From positions 186,001 to 250,000 of the forward strand of contig CBFFRQ010000030.1 in assembly GCA_965644315.1 (NCBI GenBank): 64,000 nucleotides of DNA, given 5' to 3'. Shown here one piece after another: positions 11,487-33,900 of the stretch; the first letter of the stretch is position 1, and each line of letters opens with the position of its first letter. The position numbers and the translations under genes were made by a program. The notes below the pieces were generated by a model that did not search any database, was not told the origin of the DNA, and was given only the letters and a program-made list of their open reading frames with translations. The DNA comes from Caecitellus pseudoparvulus. Lineage: Eukaryota > Protista > Bigyra: Bicosoecida.

Positions 11487-14400
11487 TCACAGCTGACTGA
11501 GCCAGCCATAGACCTCATCAGAAGGGATCATGTCGCCTGATTGACGCTGGTGTACGCAAGCTCGCAGCAGGACCAGCGCGGCTTCCCTCCGCCTGGCCTG
11601 GTACAACCTGGCTTGCTCTGCCTTCTCATGTGCCGCTTCCAGCACTGGCATGATGTGGGTGCCCACCAGAGCCCCCCAGGCCTCTTCACACACCCCGTCA
11701 GGCCACTCGAAGCTTCCGCTGTCCAGGTCCTCGATCAGATGTGGCAGCGCTGTCTCCAGACATCGCCGCCAGAAGTCTTCGTACCGCTTCAGTGACTGTG
11801 CGTCACCCTCAGGCTGAGCCAGCACGGCAAAGGTCTCTTGGACCAGGGCAGGAGTGACCAGTGCCAGAATTGTGTCGCTGTCAGGAACAAGCTGTGAAGG
11901 ACAGCGGGGAGTGGGGAGTGTGTGAGGGGCTGTGGCGAAGGTGCGAGGCACGGCAAGGTCGTGCGTTCGGAGTGGACGGTTCAAGAACCACCCACACGCA
12001 CCCTCATCTGCCGAAAGCCTCGGCTCACAGCTTTGGTGGCGAGCGGGCTGCACGAGCTCGCGTGCAGGTGCTTGAATGCTTCCTTTGCCTTGCGTCGCGT
12101 GTCCTGGTCCATGGCGTGGAAGCCCTTGTCCGGGCGAATCCTGGAGGCTTCCACCGCACGAGCCTGGCCCGCGGCGTACAGCAAACCGCGGACTGGGGGC
12201 ATGATGCAGTCAGTGAGGAAGGCATGCCACGCCTCCTGGCCCACCCCTTTTGGCTGTGCCCACGTCCCTCCGCACAGCCTGCGCAGAAGCGTGCCGGGCT
12301 TGCGCTGCACGACATCTTCCCAGAAAGCCCCAAGCCGCTCAAGTGACGGCGCCGCCATGGGGGGCTGTGCAAGTACAGCTGAGGACTGCATCACAAGTTC
12401 GAGGGTAAGCAGAGCGTTCACTGTCTCCCCTTGGATGCGAGACTGCAAAGCGAGGGCAGGGGATCAGTGTTTCTCTCACACGCACCAGGCGCAGGCCGCC
12501 ACCTTGCGCACGGGCAAAGGAAAACCTACCCTGCGCATGGCCATGGCAAACGAGTACAACACAACAGTGATGATGTCTGGGTTGACTTTCGCTTCTTCGA
12601 GCGCGGATATCACGCCCCGAATCTCAGGCTGCAGGGTATCCTTCAGCTTGCCTTCGGCATCACGCAGGTCCTGCTGGACTTTCAGTTCCATGCGCGCCAA
12701 CGTGCTCGTATAAGAGGCGGTTTTCAAGGCTGGCAACATATGGGTGCCCACCAGAGCCCCCCAGGCCTCCTCGCACACCCCGTCAGGCCGCTCGAAGCTC
12801 CCGCTGTCCAGGTCCTCGATCAGATGTGGCAGCACGGTCCGCAGACACCGCCACCAGAAGTCCTCGTACCGCTTCAGTGACTGGACGTCACCCTGAGGCT
12901 GAGCCAGCACGGCAAAGGTCTCTTGGACCAGGGCAGGTGTGACCAGCGCCAGAAGAGTGCCTCCGTTCCTGTCAAGCTGTGAGGGGCAGCGGGTAGTGGG
13001 GGGCGTGTGAGTGGCAGTGGCAAGGCCATGAGTTCGTGGTGAGGAGGGCGAGGTCTTAACGCACAGGCCATTGAAACATTGTGTGCTTGACAACAATGAC
13101 GGCGTCGGGGTGGCACGTGGAGGCGTCCAGGGCTTCGAAGGCCTCCTCGGCCTTGCTTCGCGTAGACTGATCCAGACGATCCAGCGTCAAACTGAACCTG
13201 GCGCCCACTCGCTCAGTCATGGCGTGCAGTGTATGCTGGTACAGCGCCTCTCGCACGTGCTTCTTCACGAACATGTCCCAGTCCTCCTGAGACACCCCAT
13301 CAGGCTTGGCAAGGCTCCCCTCAGACAGTTGTTGCTGCAGGGTGTCCAGCGGCCAGCTCGTGAAGGATCGCCAGTATGCCTCGAACCGCCGCAGTGATGG
13401 TGCGTCCCCTCCAGGCTGTGCCAGCAAGCGGAAGGCCTCCTCGACGACAGCAGGGCTGGCCAGAGCTATGACAGTGTCCACGCGGTAGGAGGGGGTCTGT
13501 GGTGCAGCAGCGTGGGCTCAGTGCGGGGCGTGCGCGGGTGTGCGGGGACGGGTGGCAGTGCACGCACCTGCACAAACGCGTCCTTCACGGCGATGACGGC
13601 GTCGGGGTGGCACGTGGAGGCGTCCAGGGCCTCGAAGGCCTCCTCGGCCTTGCTTCGCGTAGACTGATCCAGACGATCCAGCGTCAAACTGAACCTGGCG
13701 CCCACTCGCTCAGTCATGGCGTGCAGTGTATGCTGGTACAGCGCCTCTCGCACGTGCTTCTTCACGAACATGTCCCAGTCCTCCTGAGGCACCCCATCAG
13801 GCTTGGCAAGGCTCCCCTCAGACAGTTGTTGCTGCAGGGTGTCCAGCGGCCAGCTCGTGAAGGATCGCCAGTATGCCTCGAACCGCCGCAGTGATGGTGC
13901 GTCCCCTCCAGGCTGTGCCAGCAAGCGGAAGGCCTCCTCGACGACAGCAGGGCTGGCCAGAGCTATGACAGTGTCCACGCGGTAGGAGGGGGTCTGTGGT
14001 GCAGCGGCGCGGGCTCAGTGCGGGGCGTGCGCGGGTGTGCGGGGACGGGTGGCAGTGCACGCACCTGCACAAACGCGTCCTTCACGGCGATGACGGCGTC
14101 GGGGTGGCACGTGGAGGCGTCCAGGGCTTCGAAGGCCTCCTCGGCCTTGCTTCGCGTAGACTGATCCAGACGATCCAGCGTCAAACTGAACCTGGCGCCC
14201 ACTCGCTCAGTCATGGCGTGCAGTGTATGCTGGTACAGCGCCTCTCGCACGTGCTTCTTCACGAACATGTCCCAGTCCTCCTGAGGCACCCCATCAGGCT
14301 TGGCAAGGCTCCCCTCAGACAGTTGTTGCTGCAGGGTGTCCAGCGGCCAGCTCGTGAAGGATCGCCAGTATGCCTCGAACCGCCGCAGTGATGGTGCGTC

Positions 14401-15402
14401 CCCTCCAGGCTGTGCCAGCAAGCGGAAGGCCTCCTCGACGACAGCAGGGCTGGCCAGAGCTATGACAGTGTCCACGCGGTAGGAGGGGGTCTGTGGTGCA
14501 GCAGCGTGGGCTCAGTGCGGGGCGTGCGCGGGTGTGCGGGGACGGGTGGCAGTGCACGCACCTGCACAAACGCGTCCTTCACGGCGATGACGGCGTCGGG
14601 GTGGCACGTGGAAGCCGACAGGGCGCCAAACACACGGCGAAGTTGGTCCTGTACGCGTGGCTCAAGCTGGCTGACTCGGTCCTCGAAGCGCTCACGAACC
14701 CTGGCCTCCATGACTTGTTTGTCGCACTCGTCGGCGAGCTCTGCGGCTTGCTTGTCCAGTACACCCACAATCAGGACTCGAAGTTGTTCATAATTATTGG
14801 CAGCTTCCAGCTTCATCGAATGGGCCCCATCGTGGGCTCCAATGAACTGCCTGAAAGGCTTTGGGAGCCAACGGGCACACTCTTGGATGAACGATTGGAA
14901 TGCGAGGTGAGGATTGGTGCTCGAAGGCGATGCACAGAAGGCTTCAAACAATGCGGTGAGTATGCTTGGTTCCAAGAGGAAGGAGAGGGTCTCCACTCGC
15001 GGAAAGCGCTGCAGGGTTGGAGAGGGTTGGCTTTCGTGCCTCATGCGCTGGGCAGCGGGCGTGGCTTGAGCGCTGTCTCACTGGGCAGCCCGCGATGGCG
15101 CGAATAGCAGCAGCGATGGCGTCAGGATCTTCACCACTGGACAGCAGGGTTTCAACGAACTGGGTGAGGGTGCCTTTTCGTGCGTCATCAGACCGCTTCC
15201 ACCAGCGATACTTCTCAAATTCCGCGACGGCGCCTGCAACGCTGATGTGGTGCGCGGGCACAGATTCAGCGGCTGCACCTGCGCGACAGGGACAATGATG
15301 GAAAAATTTTGGGTTTCTTTGTCAGACCACGGCGTCGCCCCCTCTTGGGGCGCGGAGAACGCTGTGCTCACCGCCTGCGTCGGAAGGCTGCTGCGTTGCC
15401 AT
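11487..15402 (-). CDS. Orphan modular helical repeat protein, 9 predicted exons (7 homologous ~140-aa exon modules)
   Basis: ATG at 15402 (MATQQPSDAG). GT-AG introns give one open frame to the stop at 11487. Exons 3-9 share a consensus of roughly (D/E)T..AL..P..V.E.F..LAQP.G...SL.R.E.FW...L..L..G....PDGV..E.W.. Confidence 0.7.
13096..14612. repeat. Tandem repeat, 497-bp unit x ~3.05 (71-nt intron + 426-nt exon)
   Basis: ATGACGGCGTCGGGGTGGCACGTGGA recurs at 13096, 13593, 14090 and 14587. The units differ at only a few bases. Confidence 0.97.
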
Positions 15403-15751: not shown

Positions 15752-18570
15752 TCAGTGCTGCCGAGGCAACTTGGCAAGGCGAGGATTTCCCGTTCCAGCC
15801 CGTGCACGCTTTGATCCACCTGTCTGCTCGGAGGTCCGCCCTCGGCGAGTCACCACAATGCCCGACGACGTGGTGGTCGTCGTGGGAGCCTTGCCACCGC
15901 CGTCCTCCGTGAGCTGCACTGGGCGCCCCGCGAAGGACCTCCCCGGCAGCGCTATCGATGCCTGTCTCAGGGCAAGCGGCGATTTAAAGAACAGCTTGAC
16001 AGCACCATCGCGGTGGCCACACCCCTGCACCCCCAGCACCTGCCTTCCAGCACCTGGCGTGTGTGCGTTCAGGCCTGCCACTGCCCAGCTGAAGACAGCT
16101 TCCCACCGGACACGCGCTGGCAGTCCGTGCAGGTGGGTGTGGAATTCGGAGAGTTGCAGTTTGGGCGAGCTGCGGACGGAGAGGGCCAAGTCCTCGTCCA
16201 CAGGCAAGCCGTGCATGACTTCCTGTGCCTGTTGAGCGGCTGCAGGGGTTGAGAATGTGACCGACCCGCCGCTGGCCACCAGCTGCCCAGGCCCACGTTT
16301 CACCAGGGCACTCTCTGCACCCTCCACTCGATCTTGGAATGCACGCAGCAGGTCTTGGCGGCTCCAGGAGAGTGGGACACAGCCAACCAGCAGCGTGCGT
16401 GTGCCCGCAGGTTTTGCTTGGGGTCGCGGCTCAGCGTGTCCCCCGTCGCCTGCCATTTCTGTGCCAGTGGCTGACGGGGAAGCATCAGCAGAAGCAGTGG
16501 CGGGAGGTGCTTGTGCCTCCCCACGTCCCCTGTCCCCCGACGCGCCTTCTGCATCCGACTCGTCGTCGTCATCCAGCAGGTCACCGACATCCACAGGCAG
16601 TGAGGAAGGGCTGGCGGACTGGGCTGGTGCCACGACAGCAGCAGGCGCCACGGCCCTGCCTTGCTCCACTCGTGCTGGTGGACTTGGTTCTGGGAGTTTG
16701 CAGCCCGGGGGTGGTGGTCCGTCGTGTTCGGGCAGCTTGGGGCGCGCAGAAGGGGGTGCGGTGGCACCCGGCAGGGTCATGCCTCGCACATTGTACATGG
16801 CACGCAACATGTCCTGGTGCTCCTCAAAGTGCAAGTACAGCACGGGGGGGCCTTTGCCGCGGATGACCGTTGCGCTGCTGAGGGAGGGGTGCTCTGCTTC
16901 GAAGAACGAAAAGGCGTCCTCGTCGGACCACTGCAACGGGACCGGCTCGATGCGCAGGCGGAAGGTGTCGGGTCGCAGCGCAGGGGCACTCTCCCCTGGC
17001 CGGGTGGCGGGCCTCACCCGCAGTCTTCGCCCGTGCGCACGCGTGTAGTCTAGCCGCTGCACAGCGGCATCGGCTGCTGCTTGTTGTGAAAAACGCAGGA
17101 AACCAAACCCCTTGGACCTGCCTCGATCCATTTGCACGTGAGCAGAAGTGATGTCAGGGCACAGCGGCTTGAACGTCTCCAGGAGCGCCTGGTCGTCCAT
17201 GGACGGGTGCAAGCGCAAGACGCACACTGACGGCTCCAACTGCCGCGGTGCGCTCTGGGCAGGGTGCTGCTCAGGATGGCGAGGCTGGCGTTCCCCCCGC
17301 TCCTCCCACCTGCGCTGCGGAGGTGGGTGGTGTGAGTGGCGAGCAGCCTCTGCACTTGCGGCTTGGCCTGCACATGGCTCCACGACAAGGGGGGCAGGCC
17401 CCATGCGCAAGCCGGGCAAAAGACGCAAGGCATCTGCATGTGCTGCAGCATTCACCGTGCGCACGATGGCCACGGGCGGCGCGTCAGCGTCTCGCGGTAT
17501 CCAAACATTGTCCACACCCCCTGGAATACTCCGGTCCACAAACTCATACACTGCCTTCATTGTGACGCCAGAGGGTAAGTTGGACACCCGCAGCTCCAGA
17601 GACTGCTGGGCATCACGGGAGGGTGGCGTCCGCGGAGGGTTGCCAGACACCTGCACCACACTTCCTCCGACTCGCACCGGCGTGGGGTCTGCTAAGAAGG
17701 CAGCTGCCTCCCGCGCATCGGCAAGGCGTACTCTGGCGGTGGGCATGGGCGCTAAGTCAGCCCCACCTTCTCGGCGCACGCCAATGGCAACCATACTGCG
17801 CAGGCGCCGCTGCAGGGCGGCGAAGACGTCTCCCTCCAACGTACCCCGAGGCAGGCCGGCCAGGAACACATCTTTGCCTGCAGGGACGTCCCCTGCAGTC
17901 ATACGGAGCAGCAGGGGTGACCCCTGGAAGGGCGTTCCTGTGAGCTGTGACACCGCCTTCACAGCGCTGACAAAGTCAGGCATCGTGACAACCAGGCGCG
18001 TTGGCCCTGCTGCCGCAACATGTGTGAGGCGGTGGCCCTGTGACTCCATCCAAAGCCCCAACTCCCGCTCCTGCACGCGAGGCTTCAGGTTCATCGCCCA
18101 CACCTTCACACCCTGCTCTTGCTCTGACTGGTGGCGCCTTGGGTGGGGTCTTGCGCCCACCGCGCCCTCCCCGCCATGCTGTGCCCCTCCTGGCCTCCGA
18201 GGCGTCCCGCCCCACCGCCTGTCTGCGCCGCCCTGCCTGCCACGTGAGCCAATACCCTGTCTGCGTTCCTGCCTGACATGGTGGTGTGCATCTGAATCTG
18301 CAATGCCAACGGAGTCTAGAGTGGGCTCGCTGGTCACACCCAACACCACGCCAGCGCAACTGTCAACCCACCGACACCCCGCAAGCCCTCACGTGTTGCA
18401 GCCTGGCTTCCAGACACCTGAACCGGCTCCACTGATCCAAAGGTAGCCTTCATGTACTCTGGATCGGGGACCCACTCCTGCCCATCCCAAAGCCAGCCGT
18501 TCGCACGGAGTGGCGCCTCCCCAACTTCCGCACCGCCTGCGCCAGACTGTGAATGCTTGCCCTGATCCAT
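15752..18570 (-). CDS. Multi-RRM RNA-binding protein, 2 exons
   Basis: Canonical RNP1 RSKGFGFLRF plus several degenerate RRMs (VWAMNL, VFLAGLP, LRVSNLP, LRIEPVP, LLVGCVP, LHGLP). Exon 1 (MDQGKH...) is joined via intron 18298-18392. Confidence 0.8.
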
Positions 18571-20373
18571 TGGGGAAAGAGACACGTGCCAAGCGTTTTC
18601 CTTGAATGCTTAGCGAAAATCCCAACCTGAGGGTGCTCCAGGTCGGCTTCGAAGTTGAGAGCAGTGCTCGCGCCAGCTGGCTCTGCTTTCGCTGCGGACC
18701 AACGTGACTTGCCTTCACTGCATTGGCAAATGCAGCAACGCACAAGCGCAGGAGAGGGGCTTTTTGTTTATATTTGATGTGTGTTTTTAGCCAGAACATG
18801 TTCAGTGCTTCCGGCACCGGGAGGGGCGCGACAAAAAGGCACGAGTCGACGCAGTCTGCCACAGAGGCGTCATGGGCTGTACTTGCAGACCCCGCTCACA
18901 ATGTGTATTAGGACGCAAACTGGTGAAGACCAGTTGCACTCCAAGTACTCCCAAGGTACATATTTCACTTCTGATTGTCATGAATGGGCAATGAGTGGCT
19001 TCGTTATCTGACAAAGTAGCTGGGAAGTTCCTCCTCAGCTGCGGAAATTACTTGGTTTTGCAGGCTGAGAACGTGCAGGGTTGCCGTACGCAGCACAGCA
19101 CGCAAGGTGAAGTTTGTCAAAGGGAGGCGGAAAAGGGTGGGCGCAGAAGGATTAGAACGGTGATGGGCTGCCTAGCTTCGTTTGAAGGCTTTAGTGGCCG
19201 AGATTGGTGCGCAGCGATCAACGCCAGAAAGCTCGCCGTCGTACAGCAAAGACCCGAGGATTCTTACCCCCGGGCAACGGACAGCGCCTCGACTTCACGC
19301 GTGCCTGAGGCCAAATGAACATTGCCGTGGCTTCTTGGCGGTGCGGTATGACCACAAACTGTTGAGGGGCAGGTCTCTTTTGCGGAGTATTGTGTCATCT
19401 TGCTTCTGCCTTGGAGGGCTGCTCAGAGCAAGGGTGAGGGCCACAGACAGCCCTGTTGTTGCCTTGGCACACACCAAATGCTTGTTGGGCACTCTGCTGC
19501 GTACCCTGCCCGGACGACAGAGAGGGAGCGGCAGGCAGAAGTGTGTCAGGCTCCCCCCCCTCACCAGCCCCCCGTCACCGACCCTTCGAAGGTGGCAACT
19601 TTTGCGCGAACGCCTGTCAACTGTGAGTGATTTTTCAAAGTGACGGGGACGGCCAGGAAAAGCATGCAAACGGTTCTGTTAGGTGGCTGGGGGTGGCTGG
19701 TGGGGATTGTGGCGCGCCGCGGTGGCGTGCGGGCAGTGGGGAGGCGGCCGTGTGGTGGAGAGGGGGCTGTTGGTTCGCACGGTTCGGCTGGCAAGCGCGT
19801 GCGCTGTGGGCTCAAAACTTAATATGACACAAAACTCAGATCAATTGCTGCAGTTACCTGTGGGTGCACCCTGTGGTCAGTGGCAGCGCGTGGGTCTAGC
19901 TGGTGGCGCGTGCAGGGCGTCGGCAGTGGAAGGTTGCAGGCTGCGGAAATTGACGCCGCCACCACGCCGGCCGGCAGGGGGATGTATACTCACGAAACGG
20001 CCTCCTCACGGCGCGTGAGGCAGGTTTGGCGATGCTACTTGGTACCATGACGCACTGGGTGGATTTTTGCGCCGTTTCATGTCGCCAACCTCCGGTGCCT
20101 CTGCCTCTGCCTCTGTGAGGTTGCAGCGAGTGTGGCGCGAGGCTCAGGCTCCCTCCTGAATGGACGGTGAGCGCCCTTCCTGGGTGCATGGGCTGATTCC
20201 CACGAACAGGTGAGGTGCACAGGGCACATAGGGGGGAGGGCGGTGCACTTACACCATCCACAACACAGTGCACTGCCCGTGCATGCCTGCCGGTGGAGTG
20301 CACTCCCAAGCCGTGCCGGACTGGAAGGGCGTCGCCTCGCTTGGGACTGCTCCTCAGCCACGGCACGCCACAG

Positions 20374-20960
20374 GTCATGAAGTGGCAGGGCAGCGTGCTG
20401 GACCACGTCTCGGCAGCACTTGGCGACGGGTGGAGGGGGGTGGACGCTCAGTGCGTGTGGGAGCGCGGCGCGCAGGTTGTGCTGTATGGTGGCATCAGCA
20501 CGCGCGCTGACCAGATGCAGACCCAAGGAGGGGAGGTGGATAGATCTGTGCACGAGACTGCGCTGACACGGCGAGGCCGCTGCGTTCTAACCCTGCTACA
20601 GACCTTCGTGGGAACCATCAGCTCCGAGGCGGGCGCCCAATCTGCGCCACGCCTGGCAGAGTCCGTGCTGGCCTTCGCAGACGCCGCGGTAGCCGGAGTC
20701 CTGCCTGAGTCGAGTCAGCTCTAGGCCGACTCAAGGGCCCTGACGCTGGTGAAGGCATTAAGGCGAGACATGCAGCGCGGAGAGGAAGCTGCGGTGAGCC
20801 GCTTGCCCCCTCAGGCTTTGTGCCGTCGCCACCTGAGGGATTTATACACAGCCTGGGGCACGTCACGCGGTGGTGGGCCGGGGTCCGGCTGTGCGGCAAC
20901 GGCGGCTTCCCCAGCCGCCCTGCCGGCACTAATCGCAGACGACGAGGGCCCCTCAGCGTG
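20374..20960 (+). pseudogene. Coding-like frame with an in-frame TAG inside the transposon
   Basis: GC3-rich frame VMKWQGSVLDHV..., with a 66-nt in-frame intron candidate 20536-20601 (CTAAC branch motif). TAG at 20722-20724, after which the same frame resumes (ADSRALTLVKALRRD...). Ends are uncertain. Confidence 0.35.
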
Positions 20961-23900
20961 TTGGTTGCGCTGCTTGCCAGAGGGGCCGGCGCGCAGCCAG
21001 TGGCGGGTGGGACCCCCACTTGCCGCGCTCAGTGCGGCCATGTGCTGGGCGACGTGGGTGCACGCCCGGCCTACGAAGCACGACCCGTTCACGATGCGCC
21101 AGTCTTGGGCCCCGGATGGGGGGGACTCCACGCGGTGCCAGCCACTGACACCGTCGAAGGAGGTGTCCACTGTGCGGCACAGGAACCACACGTGGCGTGG
21201 GTCGGGCACGTCTTTGGGCCGGAGGTGGGGACACAGGCACAGCGCCACGTCCAGCAACTCCCGCTGCATGCTGGGGCATGGCGCCCCTGCCTCGTGCTCT
21301 GGCAGGACAAGGTTGTCCACGTAGGCCGGCAGCTGGACGGCGTTGGTGATGCCGGAGGAGAAAGTGAGGCGCACCTTGTCGCACTGCGCCAACTGCCACA
21401 GCGGCACGTCGTCCGGCATGTCCTCCTGGCGCAACGTCCACCCGGAGCCGGTTTCGCGCAGACCCAGCCAGGTTTGGATGGCCTCCTTGCACGGGTGCTC
21501 GGAGATGTCTGGGGCCCGGCCGATGCGGCTCTTGATGGGCACACACACCGTCGGCCAGGCCATGCCGTCAGGGTTCACCGGCACCAGGAGGTCGCCGCCT
21601 TCCTGCCGAGCGAGGGCTGCCCACCCATCTGGTGAGGCCTTGAAGCCGGCCAACGGCGGCCATGGCGCGGCTTTCAGGGACGCCACCACAGTGGCACGCT
21701 TCAGCACCCGGAGACTGGCCCCCCCCACGCCCAGATTCGTGGATCGGTGGAGACGGTTCACAACGGTGTGAAACGTCTCCCCGATGTCGGTGTCCACGGC
21801 CTCAAGGCTGCCAAACCACCACATGCACCACCCCATGTGCGTGATGGCATGGGCCTTGGGGTACGTGACGTCGGCCGCGTCGCGGTCGGCGGAGGCCAGG
21901 CAGGCCTCCACCAACTGGAAGGAGACCATGGCTCGGGCGCACCACTGCGCCAAGCGGCATGGGTCTCCAGCTCCAGCCACGGCCCGGCCGTACACCAGGT
22001 GCACCAGCACCTCCAGCATACCGCAAGCCGCCTGTAGGGCATTCAGCACCTGCGGCTGCCCGACGACTTGATCATCCCTGCCAACGAGGAGCGGCAGCCA
22101 GGGCAGCGTGGCCAGCCGCTCCTCGGCAGTCAGCTTGGAAGGCCCTGAGAACAGGGCCCCTGACAGGCCTTCGCGAAGGCCCATGACCCGCACGCCGTCC
22201 ACGTTGTGGGGTGTGCACGCAGCGGCTCGGGCTTCGAAGGTTGCCTTCCGACTCTTCTGGGTGCCAACCCCGCGGGCCTCCCAGCCTCGCCGGAAGAGGC
22301 CCCAGACCTTTTCCCCGGTCACGGCAGAGGCCATGACGTGGGTACGGTCTGTGGGCCGAGCCGCGTAGGGGGAGCCTCCCGGGAACAACGCACTGTACCT
22401 TTCACAAGCACACACGTGCTGGGGGTACTTGCGCTGGTTCAGCACGGCCTTCACGCTGTCTGGCAAGCCCATCCCTTCCTCGTGGGCTTTCTTTGCTGCG
22501 TCAAGGGCGTCTTGGTGTTCCCGGGGTGGCCGGTGGGTGCAGCTCGTCAGGCAGGCGACGCATGGGGGGATGGCGAAGTCGGGCGTCTTGGGCAAGCCGG
22601 TGGCAGGGTCTTGCTTCGGAGGGGGGGGGCACGAACAGTGGGTGCTGTGGAACTGCTTGAGGTTCAGGAGCACCCAAGCCTCCTTGAAGTCCAGTGACAG
22701 GACGGCGATGAAGACCCGCACCTTGCAGTGGTACACGGTGCGGCCGCCTCGCTGTCTGTGAACAGTGCTCACCCCCAGCGCCGTCAGGCGAGCTGCTGCC
22801 TCTGCATCCTCGGTGGACGCCCAGAAAGCCCCGGCAGCGTTTCCCTCCTGGATGGGCTTGAGGAGGAGCTCCTCAAACTCGGCCTGCTTCGCCAGGTGGC
22901 GCTGCAGGCCGCCGTCGCCAACCGTGTCGGACAGGTCGGCGTCCCCTGACAGCAGGCCCACCAGCGTCGACGAGCATGTGCTCCTGGTATGAGCCGTGCC
23001 GACGCAGAGTGGGCCTATGGACAGGGGGCGCACCATGGTCTTGGAGCGCCCGTCCAGCACGGCGTCATCCAGGAAGACGCGGATGGGCATGGGCAGGGCG
23101 TGGTCGGCCAGCGCCTCCCTCCAGCACACCCGCATGCACTCGCCGGATGCAAAGCCGGAGTACGTGCGGGTGCTCGGTTCCGTGCCACCCGCGCTGGTGG
23201 GCGCCTGCAGGCCTGCCCCTGCCTTCCACGTCGTGCCAGGGAGGCGTGTCAGGGTGGCCCCTGGGCAGTTGCGTTCGAAGTGATCATATGCCAGCTCGTC
23301 TGCCTGCTGAAACAAGGAAATGCTCGTCACCGCCTCTGCACGGGTGCTGGGGACCTGCACGGCAGGCACGTGCATGGGGTCTGGGACAGTGCCCGCCCCC
23401 CGCACAGGCATCATGGTCGACACATCGTGCCGCTTGGCCATGTCCTGCAGCACTGCCTTGATGTCGAGACTGGCCACCACCGACTTGCCGGCGCAGGATG
23501 TCACCGTCCTGTCGCTGGCCCCCTTCAGGAGCGGGTACCGAGTCAGTTGCTTCTGCTGCTTGTCCAGCTCCTTCGCTGGGGGGCGAGGCATGTGGGCCAT
23601 GACCACCTTCAGGGTGCGCCACGGGGCCTTGGTCTGCAGGAGCACAGCCACAAACCAGGCCCAGTCATACGCTCGGACTGCGTGGATCCCCGCGCCACTG
23701 CACGACGTGTTCAGCATGACCTTGAGCGCATGGAGGTTTGGGGTGTCTGGGAAGTCGGTGGGGGGCGCTGGCTCCTCGGCAGGTTCGCATGCCTCCCCGC
23801 TGGGGCCGGTCTGTGGCGGGCCGGGGGCAGCAGCAGCTGCGGGAGCGTACGGCTCAGAGGCAAAGAAGCTGTCTTCGAACTCGCCATCGCCGGCTCCTGC

Positions 23901-24278
23901 CCCAAGGTCAGCGCCGTCCAGGGCTGCCGCTGGTGTCGGCGTGGCAGCCCCGAAGGGTACTCCGGCGCCGGCGCCTGCGTTGGCGCCAGGGGCCGCGTGA
24001 AGCTCTGAAAACTGCTGGGGGTTGGCGTGCTCAAGTGCATCTTGCTGTGATGCGACTGCATCTCGGGGGGATGCTGCGTGGCTGCACCGTGGAGCCTTGG
24101 AAGTGTAGCGAATGTCACGGGCGCGAAGCCGATGAGACTTCTTCACGCTGCGGTGGAGCCCAGTGCCAACGGTGTGGGGGTTCTTCTTGCAGAAACGCAA
24201 GTGATGCAAAACATTAGTGCTGCAAGAGAAGGTCTTCTGGCAGTACGGGCAGATGGCGACCTCATCATGCGAGGCCAT
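20811..24278 (-). CDS. Plavaka-family DDE transposase with an N-terminal C2H2-type zinc finger
   Basis: CPYCQKTF....LHHLRFC zinc finger, then Plavaka-type blocks PIRVFLDDAVL...VRPLSIG, VLSLDFKEA...HCSCP, PTDRTH and YPKAHAITH...FGSLEAVDTDIGETFH...HRSTN. Intact 1155-aa ORF. Confidence 0.8.
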   Translation of the reverse strand: MASHDEVAICPYCQKTFSCSTNVLHHLRFCKKNPHTVGTGLHRSVKKSHRLRARDIRYTSKAPRCSHAASPRDAVASQQDALEHANPQQFSELHAAPGANAGAGAGVPFGAATPTPAAALDGADLGAGAGDGEFEDSFFASEPYAPAAAAAPGPPQTGPSGEACEPAEEPAPPTDFPDTPNLHALKVMLNTSCSGAGIHAVRAYDWAWFVAVLLQTKAPWRTLKVVMAHMPRPPAKELDKQQKQLTRYPLLKGASDRTVTSCAGKSVVASLDIKAVLQDMAKRHDVSTMMPVRGAGTVPDPMHVPAVQVPSTRAEAVTSISLFQQADELAYDHFERNCPGATLTRLPGTTWKAGAGLQAPTSAGGTEPSTRTYSGFASGECMRVCWREALADHALPMPIRVFLDDAVLDGRSKTMVRPLSIGPLCVGTAHTRSTCSSTLVGLLSGDADLSDTVGDGGLQRHLAKQAEFEELLLKPIQEGNAAGAFWASTEDAEAAARLTALGVSTVHRQRGGRTVYHCKVRVFIAVLSLDFKEAWVLLNLKQFHSTHCSCPPPPKQDPATGLPKTPDFAIPPCVACLTSCTHRPPREHQDALDAAKKAHEEGMGLPDSVKAVLNQRKYPQHVCACERYSALFPGGSPYAARPTDRTHVMASAVTGEKVWGLFRRGWEARGVGTQKSRKATFEARAAACTPHNVDGVRVMGLREGLSGALFSGPSKLTAEERLATLPWLPLLVGRDDQVVGQPQVLNALQAACGMLEVLVHLVYGRAVAGAGDPCRLAQWCARAMVSFQLVEACLASADRDAADVTYPKAHAITHMGWCMWWFGSLEAVDTDIGETFHTVVNRLHRSTNLGVGGASLRVLKRATVVASLKAAPWPPLAGFKASPDGWAALARQEGGDLLVPVNPDGMAWPTVCVPIKSRIGRAPDISEHPCKEAIQTWLGLRETGSGWTLRQEDMPDDVPLWQLAQCDKVRLTFSSGITNAVQLPAYVDNLVLPEHEAGAPCPSMQRELLDVALCLCPHLRPKDVPDPRHVWFLCRTVDTSFDGVSGWHRVESPPSGAQDWRIVNGSCFVGRACTHVAQHMAALSAASGGPTRHWLRAGPSGKQRNQHAEGPSSSAISAGRAAGEAAVAAQPDPGPPPRDVPQAVYKSLRWRRHKA

Positions 24279-24440
24279 GTCTGCTCAAACTGCGCAGGCA
24301 GAAGCAATTACCGCACTTGCAACGCCACCACAGTGGCGCAGTCTGCACCATTTGCCAAACCCAACACCTTTCATTTGAGCAAATATTGTTGCTTTGCATT
24401 TTTGTTGTGGCTAGATCCCTGGTGCAACCCCGCTTCCCTC

Positions 24441-26242
24441 ATGAGCGCCGCTCCCTCAGGGGGACACCTGCCCCCTGCCGACGCAGCCAGTGCGCCGAGC
24501 GCCCTCCCTGCTCTAAAGCACAAGGCCGCCATGACGAAAGTGAGGCGATTTGCAGAGGAAAGGCTAGGAGGGACACATGTCGAGGGGCAAGGAAGCCACG
24601 GCCTCGACAGTGGGACCTTGAGCCGTGAGTTTGTTGTGGCAAGTTTTTCCTCAAACACGCCACGCCAACACGCCTGTGCCTGCGCCGACCCCTCAGGCAC
24701 GGACTTTCTGCGGGCAAGCTTTGCAGCATTGATGCAAACACTTGAAGGACAATCTGAGCAGCCGTCAGATGGTGCAGGTACGCCCAGCTGCACGTGCTGA
24801 AGGCGCAGCGCCTGGCCTGCGCATGCACTGGTTGGCTCCGCTCCTGCGCAGGCGAGGCGCCCGCCACCCCTGGAAGCCAGGATGTGCATGATGGGATCCA
24901 TCTCCCAGAGCTGCAAAAACTTACCAGCAGCTCCGATGCGCGTGCCAGGCGCAGGTTGTTGAGAGGGCTTGCCATCCACATGGAGGTGGTGGAGGAGATC
25001 GTGGCAGCTCAGGCCGCCACCATCGCGCAACTTGTGCGCCAAGTACAAGCCCTCTCAGCCCCAGTGCAGGTCAGCACAGCCCAGAGAAGCAAGCCCCAGG
25101 ACTGCCCACTGGTGGCATTTGGTGAAGAAGAGGGTGACCCCGCGGCCGCCTTTCGCCGACTGTGGACCAGGGCCGTCTTGGAGGGGGGTGTGGGTGTCTT
25201 TGGGGGCGGGACCTTGGATGCCGTCAAGGCCATGGTGGAGCGCCAGGAGAGTGGCCTGCCAGACTGGATGGGCGCCCTTGGCTTGGAGGCCCCCTTGCAG
25301 GGGGTCTACGAGGGGGAGCACTCCGCGGTGTGGGCGGCCGTGCAAGCTGCCGTCGCCAGCGTCAAGGAGGGCATGGGTGGGTACGCTGCGGGTCAAAAGC
25401 GCATGCGAGCGCGTGTTCGGAAGTTCATGGACAATGCGACGGGGATTGTGGGCATTCAGAAGGAGATCGGCGGAGAGGCAGTGAGCAGGTCAGCCGCCGG
25501 CCGCCGAGAGATTGACCACCGCATCCAAGTGCTGAAAGGGAACACTGAGGAGGAGGACTGGATTGCATGGTACAAGCCAAAGAACGGTCGCGTTGGGAAG
25601 GAGTCCTTCGCCAAGGCGGACATCGAGGCGCTGCACGCTGCCAACTTCGCCGCCATCGGCGTGCTGGGGAACGGCCAGGACCCCCCTCTGCTCGAGGACC
25701 TGCTGCTGGCCTCACTGCGGGACGCTGCCAGCGGCACCAGGGAGTCCAAGACGGACAAGCTGTACAGCTTCGTGCAGGTGGGGTACAACGCCGCCGTGGG
25801 GCCCAACCCCCGGGACTCAGGGTGGGGCGACCTCACCCCGCCTGACCTCTCCAAGGAGCGCTTCCACACCCTGTCGTGGGCGCACCTGCAGCTGCTCTTG
25901 CCGTTCATTGCGCTCGCGTGGCTGGACGCCCGGCGCGAGTCGCTGCGGGATGGCCGCCTGGAGTGGGTGCTCAGTCGCATGACGACCTTGGACTCGGCGG
26001 CGGACCACGCGGCGTTGATGGCGCGCCTGGAAGCTGAAGCTGCACCACAGCAAGCCCCCAGCGCTGACGCACATGGGCCGGCAAGTGGCCGCTCCATGGG
26101 CGGGGGCGTGCGCTGCCGAGAGGGAACGGGTCTGGAGGACCCACGCCGCACCAGCGAGCCCCGGAGCAGCAGCGAAAGCGGGAGCCCAGGGAACAGCTCG
26201 AGCTCCTGTGAGAGCACCGGGACCTCGTTTTGGGATCATTGA
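24441..26242 (+). CDS. Hypothetical transposon companion protein, divergent from the transposase
   Basis: ATG at 24441. Intron 24778-24851 (GTACGC...GCGCAG) joins it to the 482-aa ORF with strong GC3 bias. A short coiled coil is followed by a helical domain; no recognisable family. Confidence 0.7.
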
Positions 26243-27909
26243 CAAGCACCCACACGTGAGTGGCGGGGTGTGGAGGTGTTGCACTGACTCATCAAGCATG
26301 GGCTCATGTGCTCAGTGACGTGTACGGGCGCCCTCAATGCAGGAGCAGCGCCGCCGCTTGTCCATGCCACGGTCTGGCGTCTGTGGGCCCACCGACCCAA
26401 GACGTTGGCGGTGCCCCGGGCGCAGAGCCAGTGGCACTCCGTCACACCTGCGCAAATCAAACTCACCCTCCCATCCTACCCCCCTAACCCTTTCGCAGAT
26501 CTCTTGCTACCTGTGCGTCGTAGTGCGCCGCAGGTGAGTGTGTACAGGCGCTGGCGTGCCTGGGACCGTGCCTGCACACCATCACCTTGCCATATTCCGC
26601 AGGCACTTGCCACGCCCTCCATTCCTCTTGAATCCGCGCGCGCGCCCCAATCCACCCTCGTCCACAGGTATGCGTGTATTGAATATTGCTTTGAAGAGAG
26701 CGAAACGGGGAAGGGCGCCGCCACATTCGCTGCGCGGGCCGGTGAGTGAGTGACCCGGCGCTGTAACGCCAGTGCCAACGCACACTCTGACAGGGAGCCC
26801 CCGCTCGGCCCTGCGCCCACCCCTGCACTGTACAGACCCACATAAAGCATATCAACCATCAAAGGTGAGTGTGCGGGTGCTCACAGCGCTCGTGCACCGC
26901 CCACGCCTGCACCCGTACAGGCGTTTCCTCCTGCGCAGAGCCTCTGCAACGCCATCACGCAGCCCGCCCCCCCCCTTCCTCCACAGGGAGCGCCAGGACG
27001 CATGTTCCCACTGGATGACTTCCCGGACCAATCAGGTGAGCCCTTGCGGGACGTGCTGGCCCCCGCAATGGCGTCTTCGCAGTGCCTGTGCCGCCAGCGC
27101 AGCGTGCGTGGGCACGCACGCGAGGCGCAGGCGGCCCAGGCCAATGGCTGCATGGCGCGGCCCCGCAGGGGCCACGGGCGCACTGTACAATGCAATGAGC
27201 ATCACACAGGGCCTGCATTTCGGCGCGCGGAGCCCAATTCAGCGGGCAGGGGGGCCGGCTGCCAGGGGGCGCCGCGGGCGAGGGCAGCCCCCATCAACCG
27301 CGCCTTGGTTCGTGCACGTATCGCTAGCCTGCCCCCCATCAACGAAGGAACCCCCGCGTGGTTCCCACCCCGCAGGGATCAGTGACGGCCGCGAGCGCCC
27401 CCTTAGCGCTCATGTTGAAGGACCCAACGCAAATTCTTCTTCTGCCCCGATTCATGAGCACGTTGAACTTGTTTTGTGTTTTACTGGCCGAGACTCTAGG
27501 TACCCGTCTGCTCGCCGTGCATCGCTTGAGCGGTGTGCCCACCAGAAGGAGAGGGCTGATGCGGAACGAGTTCAACCATCACAAGCAAGGTTGCTGTGCT
27601 GTCGCCTTGCCCAGGCCTGAGCTTCAGTGTCAGTGGAGACTTCCTGCTGTAGACACTGAGGTTGAACCTTCTTGACTCCTCATTCCAGACCTCGTCGTTT
27701 GACGCCGGATCTCAGCCATGTTGCAGGTTGCTGCGGCCCTCCAGCCACCTTGCACTAGCACCGCACGTTCCTCGCATGGGCGAGGGTCTGCACCTGCGTC
27801 GATCGTGAAAAGGTTCGATATTGCGATGATGACTTTTTGGGGCAATATCCTTGAACGTCATGCCGTTCTAGCCAAGACGGGCAGTCCACGACAGCGTGTA
27901 GCTGGCAGC

Positions 27910-30900
27910 ATGTGGTGCCTGGCTCTCTCCCTCACTTTCGCTTTGACAGGCTTTTGCCATGCAAGTGCCAGGCCATCGCTGATTGAGGTTGGAGAGGGAG
28001 GGTTTTATGGCAGGCATGTTCGTCGGCTCGCAGGTGCGGGGTCACATGGCTTCAATGTTTCTGCTGGGGCCTCTCACACATGTGCCTGGCTTCATGGCAA
28101 AGTGCGATGCTGGGGATACGGAAGTGATGGGCGGCTGGGGTACGGCAACACCAACAACATTGGTGATGATGAGCTCCCGTACACTGCAGGCACTGTGAAT
28201 CTGGGCGTTGGTATGACTGCCACACAGGCCTCAGCTGGGCACTATCACACTTGTGCTGTGTTGAGCAGCGGCGATGTGACGTGCTGGGGATTCGGAAATT
28301 ATGGGCGGCTGGGGTACGGCAACACGAACGACATTGGCGACGATGAGCTCCCGTACACTGCAGGTACTGTGGATCTGGGTGCTGGTGTCACTGCCACACA
28401 GGTGGCAGCAGGGACTCAGCACACTTGTGCTGTGTTGAGCAGCGGCGATGTGATGTGCTGGGGACAAGGAGGTAATGGGCGGCTGGGGTACGGCAACACG
28501 AACGACATTGGCGACGATGAGCTCCCGTACACTGCAGGCACTGTGAATCTGGGTGCTGGTGTGACAGTCACGCAGGTGGCAGTAGGGTACTTTCACACAT
28601 GTGCTTTGTTGAGCAGCGGCGATGTGATGTGCTGGGGAGGTGGAGACTATGGGCGGCTGGGGTACGGCAACACCGACAGCATTGGCGACGATGAGCACCC
28701 GTACACTGCGGGCAGTGTGAATCTGGGCGTTGGTGTGACTGCCACACAGGTGGCAGCAGACCGCTTTCACACTTGTGCTGTGTTGAGCAGCGGCGATGTG
28801 ATGTGCTGGGGCCGTGGAAATAATGGGCGGCTGGGGTACGGCAACACGAACGACATTGGCGACGATGAGCTCCCGTACACTGCAGGCAGTGTGAATCTGG
28901 GTGCTGGTGTCACAGTCACACAGGTGGCAGCGGGGTACTTTCACACTTGTGCTGTGTTGAGCAGCGGCGATGTGATGTGTTGGGGACCAGGAGACTATGG
29001 GCAGCTGGGGTACGGCAACACGAACGACATTGGCGACGATGAGCACCCGTACACTGCAGGCACTGTGAATGTGGGCGCTGGTGTCACAGTCACACAGGTG
29101 GCAGTAGGGGGCTATCACACATGTGCTGTGTTGGTCAGCGGCGATGTGATGTGCTGGGGAGATGGAAACGTTGGCAAGCTGGGTTATGGCAACACCAACC
29201 ACATTGGTGACAATGAGCTCCCGTACACTGCTGGTTCCGTGCCCCTTTTGCCACCTCCATCACCGTCACCGAGCGCAACGCCGACCAGCACTCCAAGTGG
29301 ATCAGTATCTCCGTCAGCACCACCCTCCCCGACTCAGACTTCATCCGTCTCCCCAACTGCCTCTCCCACTGCTTCTGTATCTCCCACTCCGACAGCATCA
29401 GTCACGGCATCGGCCACTGTGTCGCCATCGGTCTCGGGCACTGTGTCGCCGTCGGCCTCGGGCACTGTGACTCCGTCGGCATCGGCCACTGTGACTCCGT
29501 CGGCCTCGGGCACTGTGTCACCATCGGCCTCGGGCACTGTGTCGCCGTCGGCCTCGGGCACTGTGACTCCGTCGGCATCGGCCACTGTGTCGCCATCGGC
29601 CTCGGGCACTGTGTCGCCATCGGCCTCGGGCACTGTGTCGCCATCAGGCACTGTGTCGAGCTCGCCAACGCCAAGCACATCTGCCACAGCGACCACCGCT
29701 CCCTCTCCAAGCCAGTCAAGCACGACTCAGTCCACAGCCACACCCACCACATCTGCAGCTGCTACAAGCAGCGCTTCCCCAACTGCCCTGGCCAGCACCA
29801 GCACAGCACCATTGAATGGGCAGCTCCAGGGTGACACGATCTGGCACGCGCTGTTCCTGCCTCGGCAGCCTCCTCGTGTTGTGCTCCAAGACGCATCCAA
29901 CTCAAACGCAAGTATTCCCCTCACGCTGCGAATCGGGGCAACCTCAGCCCAATGGGCTGCTTTCCTTCGTCTGGTTGGAAGCGCGGCGATGGACCAGGCG
30001 TACCTCTCCTGCGACCCCGAAGCTCCAGTGTGTGCATCCTCAACGCCATCCGAGGTGCAGGCAGCACTGACCAGCATTGCGCCTGAGGCTCTCGCCTTGC
30101 TGCCGAGTGTTGCAGTGCAGCCAGGCGGCAGCGCAGGGCTGCTGAGCACGAACGGCGAGGTGCAAGAGGTCGCCTTGACAGCCGAGGTGTCGCTTCCAGC
30201 AGTGTTGGAGTCGCACGCCGTATCTGCCGTGTTCTCCTTCGCCCTCACGGTGTCAAGGGTGGGTGATGCGTCTGGGACTGAGCTTGACTCCATCCCCATC
30301 ACCATCGAAGTGCTGCTTCCCAAGCTCAGCGTGTCGCCTCAGTCCATCATTGAGTTCTTGCGCCCGAGCTCAGTTGTGCCTGGTGGCATGAGCACCATGA
30401 GCATCACAATGTCCAACACTGGCGCCAGGTCCGGCATGGTGCTTGCCTTACTTCCATATGATGTTTGCTGGCTCACGCTACCCGCAACTGCACAGCCGTG
30501 CAGCACTGCCAAACTCCAGCGCTTGCCTTCTTCCATGCAGTCTGGTCATGCTTGTGTGCAGGTTGCCGTTCCCGCCCACAGCACCAGCTCCTTGCGGCTG
30601 CAGGCGTTGGTGGCTGGGCTGCGAGCCGGGCTCCACTCAGCCACTGTGACCATCGCCATGGAGTCAGGTGGGGCGCCACCGGGCTGGGAGGTGACCCCTG
30701 TGCCTGTGCGACTGCTGGTATCGGCGGTGTCCATCTGCCCCAGCTCAGTGTCCATCCAGGGCTTGCGGGCTCCCCGGCTGGCGTCGTCCCAGCCCACAGT
30801 GTTTGCCCAAGGCATCGTGCACATGACGAACCTCGGCACTGGGTCCATGCGTGTGCAGCGAGCAGCCGTACTGGATGTGGACAGTGCCAGCCTTGCACCT

Positions 30901-33900
30901 CCAGGCAAGAACTCCAGCTGTGCATCTGGAACACGCAACGCCAGTGCGGACTTCGCAGCTTTGACTTCCCAGCACAGTGCCCTTCAGTGGGCGTCCATGA
31001 GCATCTCCAGTGTGCCTGTGCCAGCTTTTGGCGGGGAGGTGGCCGAGCAGCGGCTGTTCTGGGAAGGCGAAGCGGCGCGGGGTGTGGGCGAGGTGGCGTT
31101 CCTTGACTCGGGCGCAACGCAGCCAGGCTCACAGGCGGCATTGCACGTGACGCTGCACTACAACAAGCACAGCATGCCTCACCTTGGGAGTCATGTCGGC
31201 ACGATTGCTCTTGTCACTCGCGATCTCGTGACGGGGGTTGAGGAGCTGCACAGCATTCCCGTCCAAGTCAGCACAGGCCCTGGAGCAGCCAGTGCCGCAG
31301 CCAGCACTGTCCACCCTCGGCTGACCCCCATTCAGCTGGATTCAGCCGTCATGCTGTCAGGCGGTGCGCAGGTGGCACCTGGCACACGGCAGAGCGCGTC
31401 AGTGGCGGGCGTGCTGCACGTTGTGGATGCCATGGGCTTCCCGCTGTCCAGCGATTTAGCCAAACAAGCCGTGCGTATCGAGGCCATTCGGGGTGCTGGA
31501 GGCCGAAGGCTTCAGAGTGGCGAGTGCCCGGATGGCAGTAGCGTGCCAGCCTGGGTACAGGAGGCTTCTCCAGCTGCAGTGCAAGCTGTGGCAAGTGGAG
31601 GCGGGCAGGGTGCTGTAGAGGTGCTCGTGGCACCCACAGCTCCAGGCGACTTGGCCCCCACCTTCCACGTGGCGCCTGTGGATGTGTCGCCACCAAGGAG
31701 CAACTTGGCCTCGCCAGTGCTGCACAGCACGGAAGGGTGGGACGCGCCGCCAACTGCCTGCGTGGCCCTGGCCTCGTCAGTGACGCTGGAAGTGCTGCCA
31801 GCGCTGTGCTCGGGGGTTGGGCGTGTGAGTGTGGCGAATGGCACTCGCTGTATGTGTGCGGCAGGCTTCGGCATGGACCCAAGTCTGGCCTCGGCCCAAG
31901 TCACCCCCGCCTCGCTGCGTTGCCTGCCCTGTCCCGCGGGCACCTTCAGCTCCCTGCCCACTCTGCGGCCTGTGGATGCGGAGGGCGTGTGTGTGCTGTG
32001 TGTGGAAGGCACGTACTCGCTGGATGGCGCCAGAGCGTGTGGGCCATGTCCTGCGAACACGGCCTGTGCGGGGGGCAAGGTGCAGGTGAATGCGGGGTTC
32101 AGCTTGGCGCGTGGGGGGTTGAATGCTGAGGACATCACAGCAGTGGCATGTCCGAACCCATTTGCGTGTGAGGTGGGCGGGAACACCTCCGCCTTGTTGC
32201 AGAACACGCAGTGTGCGGAAGGGCACGACTCAACCAGCGAGCTGTGCGGCCACTGCAGTGCCGGTTGGCAGCACTACCCCCCCGCATCAGGCACGCGAGG
32301 CGCTTGTCGTAGGTGTCCTCCCGCGGCCCAGCAAGGCCTCGCGATTGCTGCTGCGTTCATGTTCGCCCTGGCACTATACATGTGCGTGATCGTGAGCTGG
32401 CGTGCAGGTGGCGAGCAGTTGGCCGTTGTGAAGGTGAAGCTGACGCGGAAGAGTGTTCACGCGACCAGCACAGGCCGTCTCCGAGGAGACGAGGCCAACG
32501 TGTCTAGTCTGCGTTTCACTGTGTTGGGCTTGCACTGGGTGACGTCCGACGCGGTGCGCACTGTGACCGGCTTGGCTCACTCCACCGTGGCAGGCATGTT
32601 GGCGCCACTGCGGAGCGGGATCAGCCCATCCCTCCGCGCCTTTGCCGCTTGGGCGCTGCTCATCTTCCTGCAGCTGAACGGCGCCATTCGCGACCTGCGC
32701 ACGGACGCCTCGCCTGCTCTGACACTGTCATCTGCGGTGCTGGGCGCGCCGTCTCTGCTGTCCCCGAACAGCTTCGAGTTCGTGTGTGCCTTTGGCCAGG
32801 CTGGCGTTGGGCTCAATCGCCTGTACGTGGGGCTGCTGTTCCCGTTGGTGGTCTTGGCTGTGGCTGCGGCGGCTGCAGCGCTTGCCGGCGTGGCGATGCA
32901 CACTTTCCAGGCCCGGGCATGTCCCGGTTCACAAAGGATGCTCAACACGGTGCTGGACACAGTTGCATGCGTGCTGCCGCTGGCACTGTGGATGTCGCTG
33001 CCGCCTGCGCTGAACGCTGTGGCCACCGCCATCCTCCCTGTTGTGCAAGGGCGTGCAGGTGAGTCTCGCCTGGTGTCTGATTTTTCCACCATCGATGAGG
33101 GGCAAAGAGTGGGCCTGTCCATCTTGGCGGCTCTGTTCATCATCGCTGTGTGCCTCGGCCCACCTCTAGTGCTGGCCAAGGTGTACAGCACCGCGAACAG
33201 GCTGGAGGAAGGCGCCTTCATCGCAGAGGGGCGCATGGCTCGCGAATGCCACACCAGCGCACCATCCTTCGCCAGGCGAGCATGGGGGTATTTGTGGGGA
33301 TGGCACCAGCCCGGCACTTGGTGGTGGAATGCGGTGCTCTTCACAGCATCCTGTTTCTTTGCCTTGCTGCCCGCCATTGCCGCCACCGTCTGGCTGCGTG
33401 CCTTCCTCGCCATGCTCATCTGCACGTTGCTTTGGCTTGCGCTCGGGTACCTGGAGCCATACAACGTGCATGTGGCGGTGGACCAGCAGCGGTCAGTGGG
33501 TCATTTGGTTGGCTTGCCTTCCACTGTCGCTCCAGGTATGGAAAAGAGCGACCTTCGACAGCAGTTGACGGTGCACCGCATGCATGCGGAGGCGCATACA
33601 CGGACCTGGATGATGCGGGTGATCGTCATTGCAGTGCTGGCACATGCTGGCGCCATCCACGTCAGCAACGTCTGGCGCGTGATGCTATTCGCTGACTCCT
33701 CCTCCTCTGCCGCAGCTGCTGGAGCGCCCAACGCGAACCTGGAAGGCAGTCTCCGCCCCAGCACACTGCGTGGCTCACTGGCTGCGGCGGACTGGGTGCT
33801 GTGGCTGCAGCTGTGGCTTCCAGTGTGCATGTGTTTGTTTCTGCTGCTTCCAGGGCGAGTTGTGGCATCGTGCACGGCGCTGTGGGCATCGGCGTCGAGT

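Follow-up and report, generated by a model that had tools for sequence, protein, structure and literature searches.

The window considered here, 64,000 nucleotides of the marine protist Caecitellus pseudoparvulus (Bigyra: Bicosoecida; assembly GCA_965644315.1, contig CBFFRQ010000030.1, positions 186,001 to 250,000 of the forward strand), carries at 19572-27388 a 7.8-kb element that is best read, with a probability of roughly 0.82, as an autonomous cut-and-paste transposon nearest to Plavaka. It would have moved recently and would bear a partner gene together with captured host DNA. Its transposase appears to belong to the CMCT clade (CACTA, Mirage, Chapaev and Transib), whose marks are a C(2)C and an H(3-4)H motif, mostly 5'-CA..TG-3' termini and a target-site duplication (TSD) of 2-5 bp.

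Both boundaries of the element are exact, as three copies (L001, L002 and L066) cease to match at them, and a preliminary description that had placed a complete transposon here is borne out by the ends, repeats, copies and empty site. The terminal inverted repeats (TIRs) are 13 bp long, imperfect (11 of 13 bases paired) and begin with CCGTCAC, and CC stands at either side of the element. One contig of run X11 joins the left flank directly to the right flank with a single CC, and thus represents an empty allele. Strains thus differ in whether they carry the insertion, and as the empty allele has one CC fewer, the target duplication measures 2 bp. Similarly, L008, a paralog of the RCC1-repeat gene next door, aligns gap-free over the insertion site when the element is taken out together with one CC. 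Most sister families have CCGTCA at their termini, and one has CAGTCA; the termini are CC..GG in the window element, whose TSD is 2 bp, and CA..TG in the L025 family. The ends, the arms and the transposase lie as follows:

19570..19571, no strand: left TSD copy (CC), 2 bp; the X11 empty allele is one CC shorter
19572..19584, + strand: left TIR, 13 bp, beginning CCGTCAC, with weaker likeness to the right end out to ~29 bp; from copy boundaries
19585..20241, no strand: left arm; a tip on C204 matches the element's first 195 bp at 89%
20811..24278, - strand: CMCT-type (Plavaka-related) DDE transposase, 1155 aa; from motifs, profile matches and core model
27084..27141, no strand: subterminal imperfect hairpin, ~80% self-complementary; from the sequence
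27376..27388, - strand: right TIR; from copy boundaries and pairing with the left end
27389..27390, no strand: right TSD copy (CC); from the X11 empty allele

When window positions 18000-29000 were searched against the same genome (30.6 Mb in 215 contigs), two more full-length copies were found, on contigs C141 and C190, with matches that begin and end at the limits first proposed. The element also occurs on the marine metagenome contigs L066 and L074, both of which break exactly at the left TIR. Identity over the whole element is 96.0-98.7% (L001, 98.7%; L002, 96.5%; L066, 96.4%; L074, ~96%). The four right flanks that were read (window, L001, L002 and L066) are mutually different, L074 ending short, and additional right-end flanks are present in runs X11 and X2. 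By its copies and ends, the element is a young and apparently autonomous cut-and-paste DNA transposon that has moved recently; insertion polymorphism and intact frames suggest that it is active at present. The chance that the locus is instead a single-copy gene that was domesticated, or a segmental duplication, is negligible: two of the in-genome copies do sit at contig ends, but the sharp TIR boundaries, the differing flanks, the TSD and the empty allele all speak against it. The further copies and shared ends that the preliminary description had advised looking for were found, and so was an empty site.

Traces of the family occur elsewhere. Lone left tips are present at C204:6375-6569 (L018/L065; 195 bp at 89%), adjoining another RCC1-repeat gene, and at the end of contig C39 (L056; 33 bp). 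Two copies of one family lie 8.7 kb apart at C18:167679-179758 (L027/L028), and several related elements are packed or nested on C161 (L031/L037).

The transposase is encoded by a 1155-codon frame at 20811-24278 on the - strand, in which all the Plavaka-like blocks named beforehand are present. The zinc finger had been called C2H2; the finger is there, but in the window copy it is C2HC (C10, C13, H26, C30). The other key residues are D404, D530, a CxC at 548-550, D644xxH647, H810xxxH814 and E834. Over 17 sequences, D404 and E834 are invariant and D530 is nearly so, and all three line up with the acidic positions of Plavaka. In all in-genome families CxC (C548, C550) replaces C(2)C at the aligned position after the second Asp, whereas the H(3-4)H motif ahead of the catalytic Glu is kept as H810xxxH814, its second His being absent in one sister family. 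Five copies have a full-length transposase with all key residues, so the candidate catalytic acids (D404/D530/E834) are retained as had been suggested. The ratio of non-synonymous to synonymous substitution rates (dN/dS) among copies is 0.25-0.40, and the frame is, on these ratios, under purifying selection.

Homology searches place this protein step by step. On its own, the transposase has no significant match in Pfam or PDB sequence searches, and a word-index homolog search with it returned just one near-identical metagenome copy. The genome contains 48 transposase matches, which include several families at ~69%, 32-34% and 26% identity. Three of eight aligned family members match the Plavaka family PF18759 weakly (best E 0.0019), and a profile built from eight in-genome transposases reaches 25 proteins. 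Among the distant proteins found in this way, seven of the nine scanned match PF18759, six of them above the cut-off; those that are named are fungal, and one without a Pfam match is red-algal. A profile-profile comparison with four fungal Plavaka proteins gives a probability of 97 (E 7e-11). The Plavaka profile, proposed earlier as a check, thus fails to match the window protein but matches its distant homologs. In an unrooted tree of 20 rows (without EnSpm, Mirage or Chapaev), the genome families and two outside proteins form a separate clade with support 93/94. Two metagenome contigs with distant Plavaka-like transposases (L067:56 and L072:42) also show CCGTCAC near the contig start; the partner end was not found on them, and the match may be chance.

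Structure prediction leads to the same neighbourhood. A full-length model was set aside (predicted local distance difference test, pLDDT, 40; its fold search uninformative). The core model, covering residues 365-875 and built from 17 sequences, has a pLDDT of 82. Against solved structures, Foldseek ranks RAG1 first (E 5e-5; VIA Z 14.8), followed by ProtoRAG, the P element and Transib; Z is 14.3 for ProtoRAG and 8.8 for Transib, at 9-12% identity. Against the Atlas, the best matches are Plavaka clusters (template modelling score, TM, 0.71-0.72), then Transposase_21 (0.65-0.67). The core is accordingly predicted to have an RNase-H-type DDE fold with an insertion domain like that of RAG1 and Transib; such a fold was something that the preliminary description had expected of a true transposase. 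By analogy with RAG1/Transib chemistry, the transposase would bind the TIRs, excise the element and insert it at a cut staggered by 2 bp.

Plavaka is the nearest transposase both by profile and by predicted structure, the DDE triad and the D-x-x-H and PK-x-H blocks are shared, and both have short TIRs, a 2-bp TSD and one or more accessory genes next to the transposase, as described for Plavaka elements of fungi and red algae (PMC12730594; bioRxiv 10.1101/2025.02.11.637652). However, published termini are TGT..ACA in PlavakaA and CATCA..TGATG in PlavakaB (PMC12730594), whereas those of the window element are CCGTCA..TGACGG (CAGTCA in one sister). The window transposase has CxC instead of C(2)C and no Pfam match, and the element measures 7.8 kb, compared with 17-19 kb for the giant red-algal Plavaka (bioRxiv 10.1101/2025.02.11.637652), and has a marine protist as host. 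The element seems to operate in the manner of Plavaka/CACTA, and its transposase seems to be a divergent CMCT branch nearest to Plavaka. Strict membership in PlavakaA or PlavakaB is doubtful, since neither the termini nor the C(2)C motif agree with those of the published lineages. The label "Plavaka-type" holds for the nearest relatives and fails for the termini, the motif and the Pfam match. An ordinary, merely divergent PlavakaB element is a sizeable minority possibility: the nearest neighbours in sequence and structure are Plavaka, the 2-bp TSD fits, and the CGTCA within the terminus differs by a single transition from the CATCA of PlavakaB, offset by one base. Against it stand the sister termini, mostly CCGTCA and once CAGTCA rather than TGT or CATCA (PMC12730594), the CxC, and the clade (93/94) that the genome families form with the two outside proteins.

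Other known systems are further away. EnSpm/CACTA (Transposase_21, PF02992) shares the CMCT fold (Atlas TM 0.65-0.67), a two-gene layout and a TSD of 2-3 bp, but the window element has neither the CACT terminus nor a Transposase_21 match, and its partner gene is arranged head-to-head and related to no Pfam family. RAG1, ProtoRAG and Transib give the best solved-structure matches to the modelled core. However, identity to them is only 9-12%, the window element has no RAG2-like partner, and its TSD is 2 bp, while that of RAG1, ProtoRAG and Transib is 5 bp. The main reading, a divergent CMCT transposon nearest to Plavaka, extends the range of Plavaka-like elements, known in the cited literature from fungi and algae, to a marine protist, where the ends and the motif are distinct and the partner is an orphan; a literature search of incomplete coverage for Plavaka in stramenopiles surfaced only a fungal paper. 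Because the element is young and polymorphic between strains, it could be put to the test, and it might find use as a genetic tool.

The stretch from the left TIR to the transposase stop contains DNA of a different origin, which the preliminary description had taken for a damaged convergent third gene:

20242..20367, + strand: captured piece 1 of the host gene on contig C75, a partial Kelch repeat in a frame different from that of piece 2; from the match to C75
20369..20808, + strand: captured piece 2, from the same C75 gene at 85% identity, ending beside the transposase stop; from the match to C75

Both pieces match a single donor locus on C75 at 83-86% identity, an uninterrupted frame of 792 codons with Kelch, BTB and BACK domains, and the homology extends to within at most 2 bases of the transposase stop. 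The pieces are fused over a skip of 486 nt; an in-frame skip was considered and rejected, as the junction is frameshifted. In all five copies a host Trp codon has become a TAG, at 20722-20724. The captured DNA lacks the BTB and BACK domains and any whole Kelch repeat. The open frame ending at this TAG is thus real, but it belongs to a host-gene fragment and not to a gene of the element. The synonymous divergence (dS) from the donor is 0.27, compared with at most 0.07 among transposase copies, and the dN/dS of 0.49 is about the value for one constrained and one neutral branch. By this comparison, what had passed for a convergent "third gene" is part of a host Kelch-BTB-BACK gene that was captured and has since decayed into a pseudogene. 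Nearby, positions 19900-20017 match C155:3518-3632 at 74%, possibly another captured fragment.

The same slot is filled from another source in a sister family. The sister element on C149 (locus L024:55-1362, equivalent to C149:82649-83956) carries there a 1.2-kb piece whose identity to an uninterrupted frame of 1306 codons on C64 is 87%. The transposase 3' end is duplicated over ~300 bp, and the piece lies within this duplication, which is split into parts of 152 and 144 bp, as polymerase template switching would be expected to leave it (see the discussion in PMC8277862). Metagenome copies (L076/L077) have the piece too, with frameshifts from copy to copy, and a partial copy of a C149-type sister piece was seen on C13. 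Judged from the two donors, the stretch that separates the left TIR from the transposase stop serves as a slot for host DNA that has been captured. Capture would come about when the polymerase switches templates while it repairs the double-strand gap that excision leaves; it would have taken place long before the recent burst, the captured pieces being carried along passively.

This behaviour recalls Pack-CACTA, non-autonomous elements that capture gene fragments and are known from plants (PMC6379663), and the Pack-TYPE and Pack-TIR elements (PMC8903248, PMC8277862). All are TIR elements that spread fused internal fragments of host genes, with signs of template switching. However, descriptions of Pack-TYPE elements have them as non-autonomous and confined to plants, whereas the window element keeps an intact transposase and a partner gene, and here two sister families fill the same slot from different donors. 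Pack-type capture would thus occur in elements that are still autonomous, and since there are two independent donors and a readable template-switch scar, the mechanism becomes testable outside plants and animals.

The divergently transcribed second gene that had been described is present and spliced:

24441..24624, + strand: partner exon 1, open in four copies; its start codon is a prediction
24697..24777, + strand: partner exon 2; acceptor seen in run X15, following intron inferred from conserved GT..AG and the frame
24852..26242, + strand: partner exon 3; from the frame and homologs

The three exons comprise 552 codons, divergent from the transposase, and the frame is open in four copies. 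The first intron (24625-24696) was observed as a GT..AG joint in X15, and the dN/dS of the core is 0.17-0.33, as under purifying selection. Homologs with 27-30% identity stand head-to-head with sister transposases on C149, C51, C147, C161 and L068. With spliced models searched exon by exon, the window partner protein had no match in Pfam, PHROGs or PDB and no usable Atlas match, and a word search found just two family members; rows of antibody light chains from the partner-protein search were dismissed as noise. Conservation in the sister families indicates that the partner is a genuine element gene of no known family. It may, with about even chances, be a DNA-binding helper in the role that TnpA plays for CACTA, the likeliest function by analogy. 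A derivation from the DNA-binding domain of a Crypton-like tyrosine recombinase, which would make the element a hybrid, is unlikely. A sister homolog does have Atlas feature matches to integrase SAM, DUF3435, NDC10_II and DUF3504 clusters (0.84-0.87), but such scores are leads only, the window protein itself drew a blank in the Atlas, Pfam, PHROGs and PDB, and the DDE enzyme already accounts for the TIRs and the TSD.

Downstream of the partner gene lies the micro-exon array of the preliminary description, which is confirmed as a spliced region:

26499..26533, + strand: micro-exon b, 14 nt to the donor at 26513 (reading of X15 contigs) or 35 nt to the donor at 26534
26668..26741, + strand: micro-exon c, with an alternative donor after 26745; from X15 contigs
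26836..26864, + strand: micro-exon d, 29 nt, absent from one of the spliced forms, as seen from the joint 26745>26987 and a loose end at 26987
26987..27035, + strand: micro-exon e, 49 nt; from X15 contigs

Five GTGAG(T/C) donor motifs stand in 26243-27388, compared with ~0.6 per kb over the window, and the four short exons between 26499 and 27035 have conserved splice sites. Contigs of X15 connect these exons in two forms, one that includes the 29-nt exon and one that skips it; this run is labelled a metatranscriptome but flagged as probably DNA, and its contig depth cannot rank expression. The micro-exons vary like introns (8.6% vs 7.2% of sites), replacement changes predominate in all three frames, and a coding frame for the array was rejected, as no frame shows constraint. 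An open frame of 127 codons runs through the last micro-exon and is closed by a TGA in the right TIR (27383-27385); its proposed last acceptor is not conserved. DNA and protein searches of the genome found no parent locus for the array, which is probably a spliced transcript region, non-coding or decaying. The X15 letters spliced 5' of the first micro-exon are in no examined copy of the element and match C46:54786-54801 exactly, followed by GT. This match is a lead only and may reflect a chimeric transcript of host and element, or chance.

Several points weigh against the overall reading of an autonomous, capturing Plavaka relative. Both flanks were read at a single insertion only, that of the window. 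PF18759 has no match above its curated cut-off in the window protein or in the genome, and the tree has no EnSpm outgroup. The identification of the C64 donor as a host gene rests on the length of its frame and the lack of a transposase match on C64, and most other sister families show no tested capture. Finally, the Kelch piece contains a frame of 115 codons that no stop interrupts in any of the five copies, and over 144 codons the piece has five synonymous and two replacement changes, a weak hint of constraint from small numbers.

This open frame and its substitutions also speak for the proposal that the accessory segments are functional cargo, the Kelch piece acting as a 115-aa protein or a regulatory RNA and the micro-exons as a small helper protein. 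The conserved splice sites and spliced contigs of the array would agree with this, as would the real accessory genes of fungal and red-algal Plavaka (PMC12730594; bioRxiv 10.1101/2025.02.11.637652). However, the Kelch piece has no BTB, BACK or whole Kelch repeat, its junction is frameshifted and it carries a premature stop; in a sister family an unrelated, frameshifting piece takes its place; and the micro-exons are as variable as introns, with mostly replacement changes in every frame. Functional cargo is quite improbable on this evidence. The undescribed cargo set of the preliminary description is unsupported, because one item is a decayed host fragment and the micro-exons are without coding constraint; only the divergent partner behaves as a gene of the element. 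No TET/JBP, methylase, SET or 2OG-oxygenase cargo was found among the element frames, and the element shows no new enzymatic cargo.

A bolder version of the preferred reading would see here an undescribed CMCT lineage, sister to Plavaka and defined by CCGTCA ends, CxC and its own partner. Its autonomous members would repeatedly capture pieces of host genes at a fixed slot next to the transposase stop and splice the micro-exon arm onto host exons, thus acting as a live exon-shuffling engine. Taken as a whole, this is speculative and rather unlikely.

The element is inserted between two divergent host genes. On the right, 330 bp from the TIR, an intronless frame (27718-34413) encodes a membrane protein of 2231 aa with 6.5 homogenised RCC1 repeats of 174 bp. 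It has many paralogs in the genome, among them L008, which supplies the paralogous empty site. On the left, 1.2 kb from the insertion, lies the gene of an 865-aa RRM protein (15752-18349, - strand), and beyond it, at 13096-14612, a 497-bp unit is present in three repeats of 99% identity.

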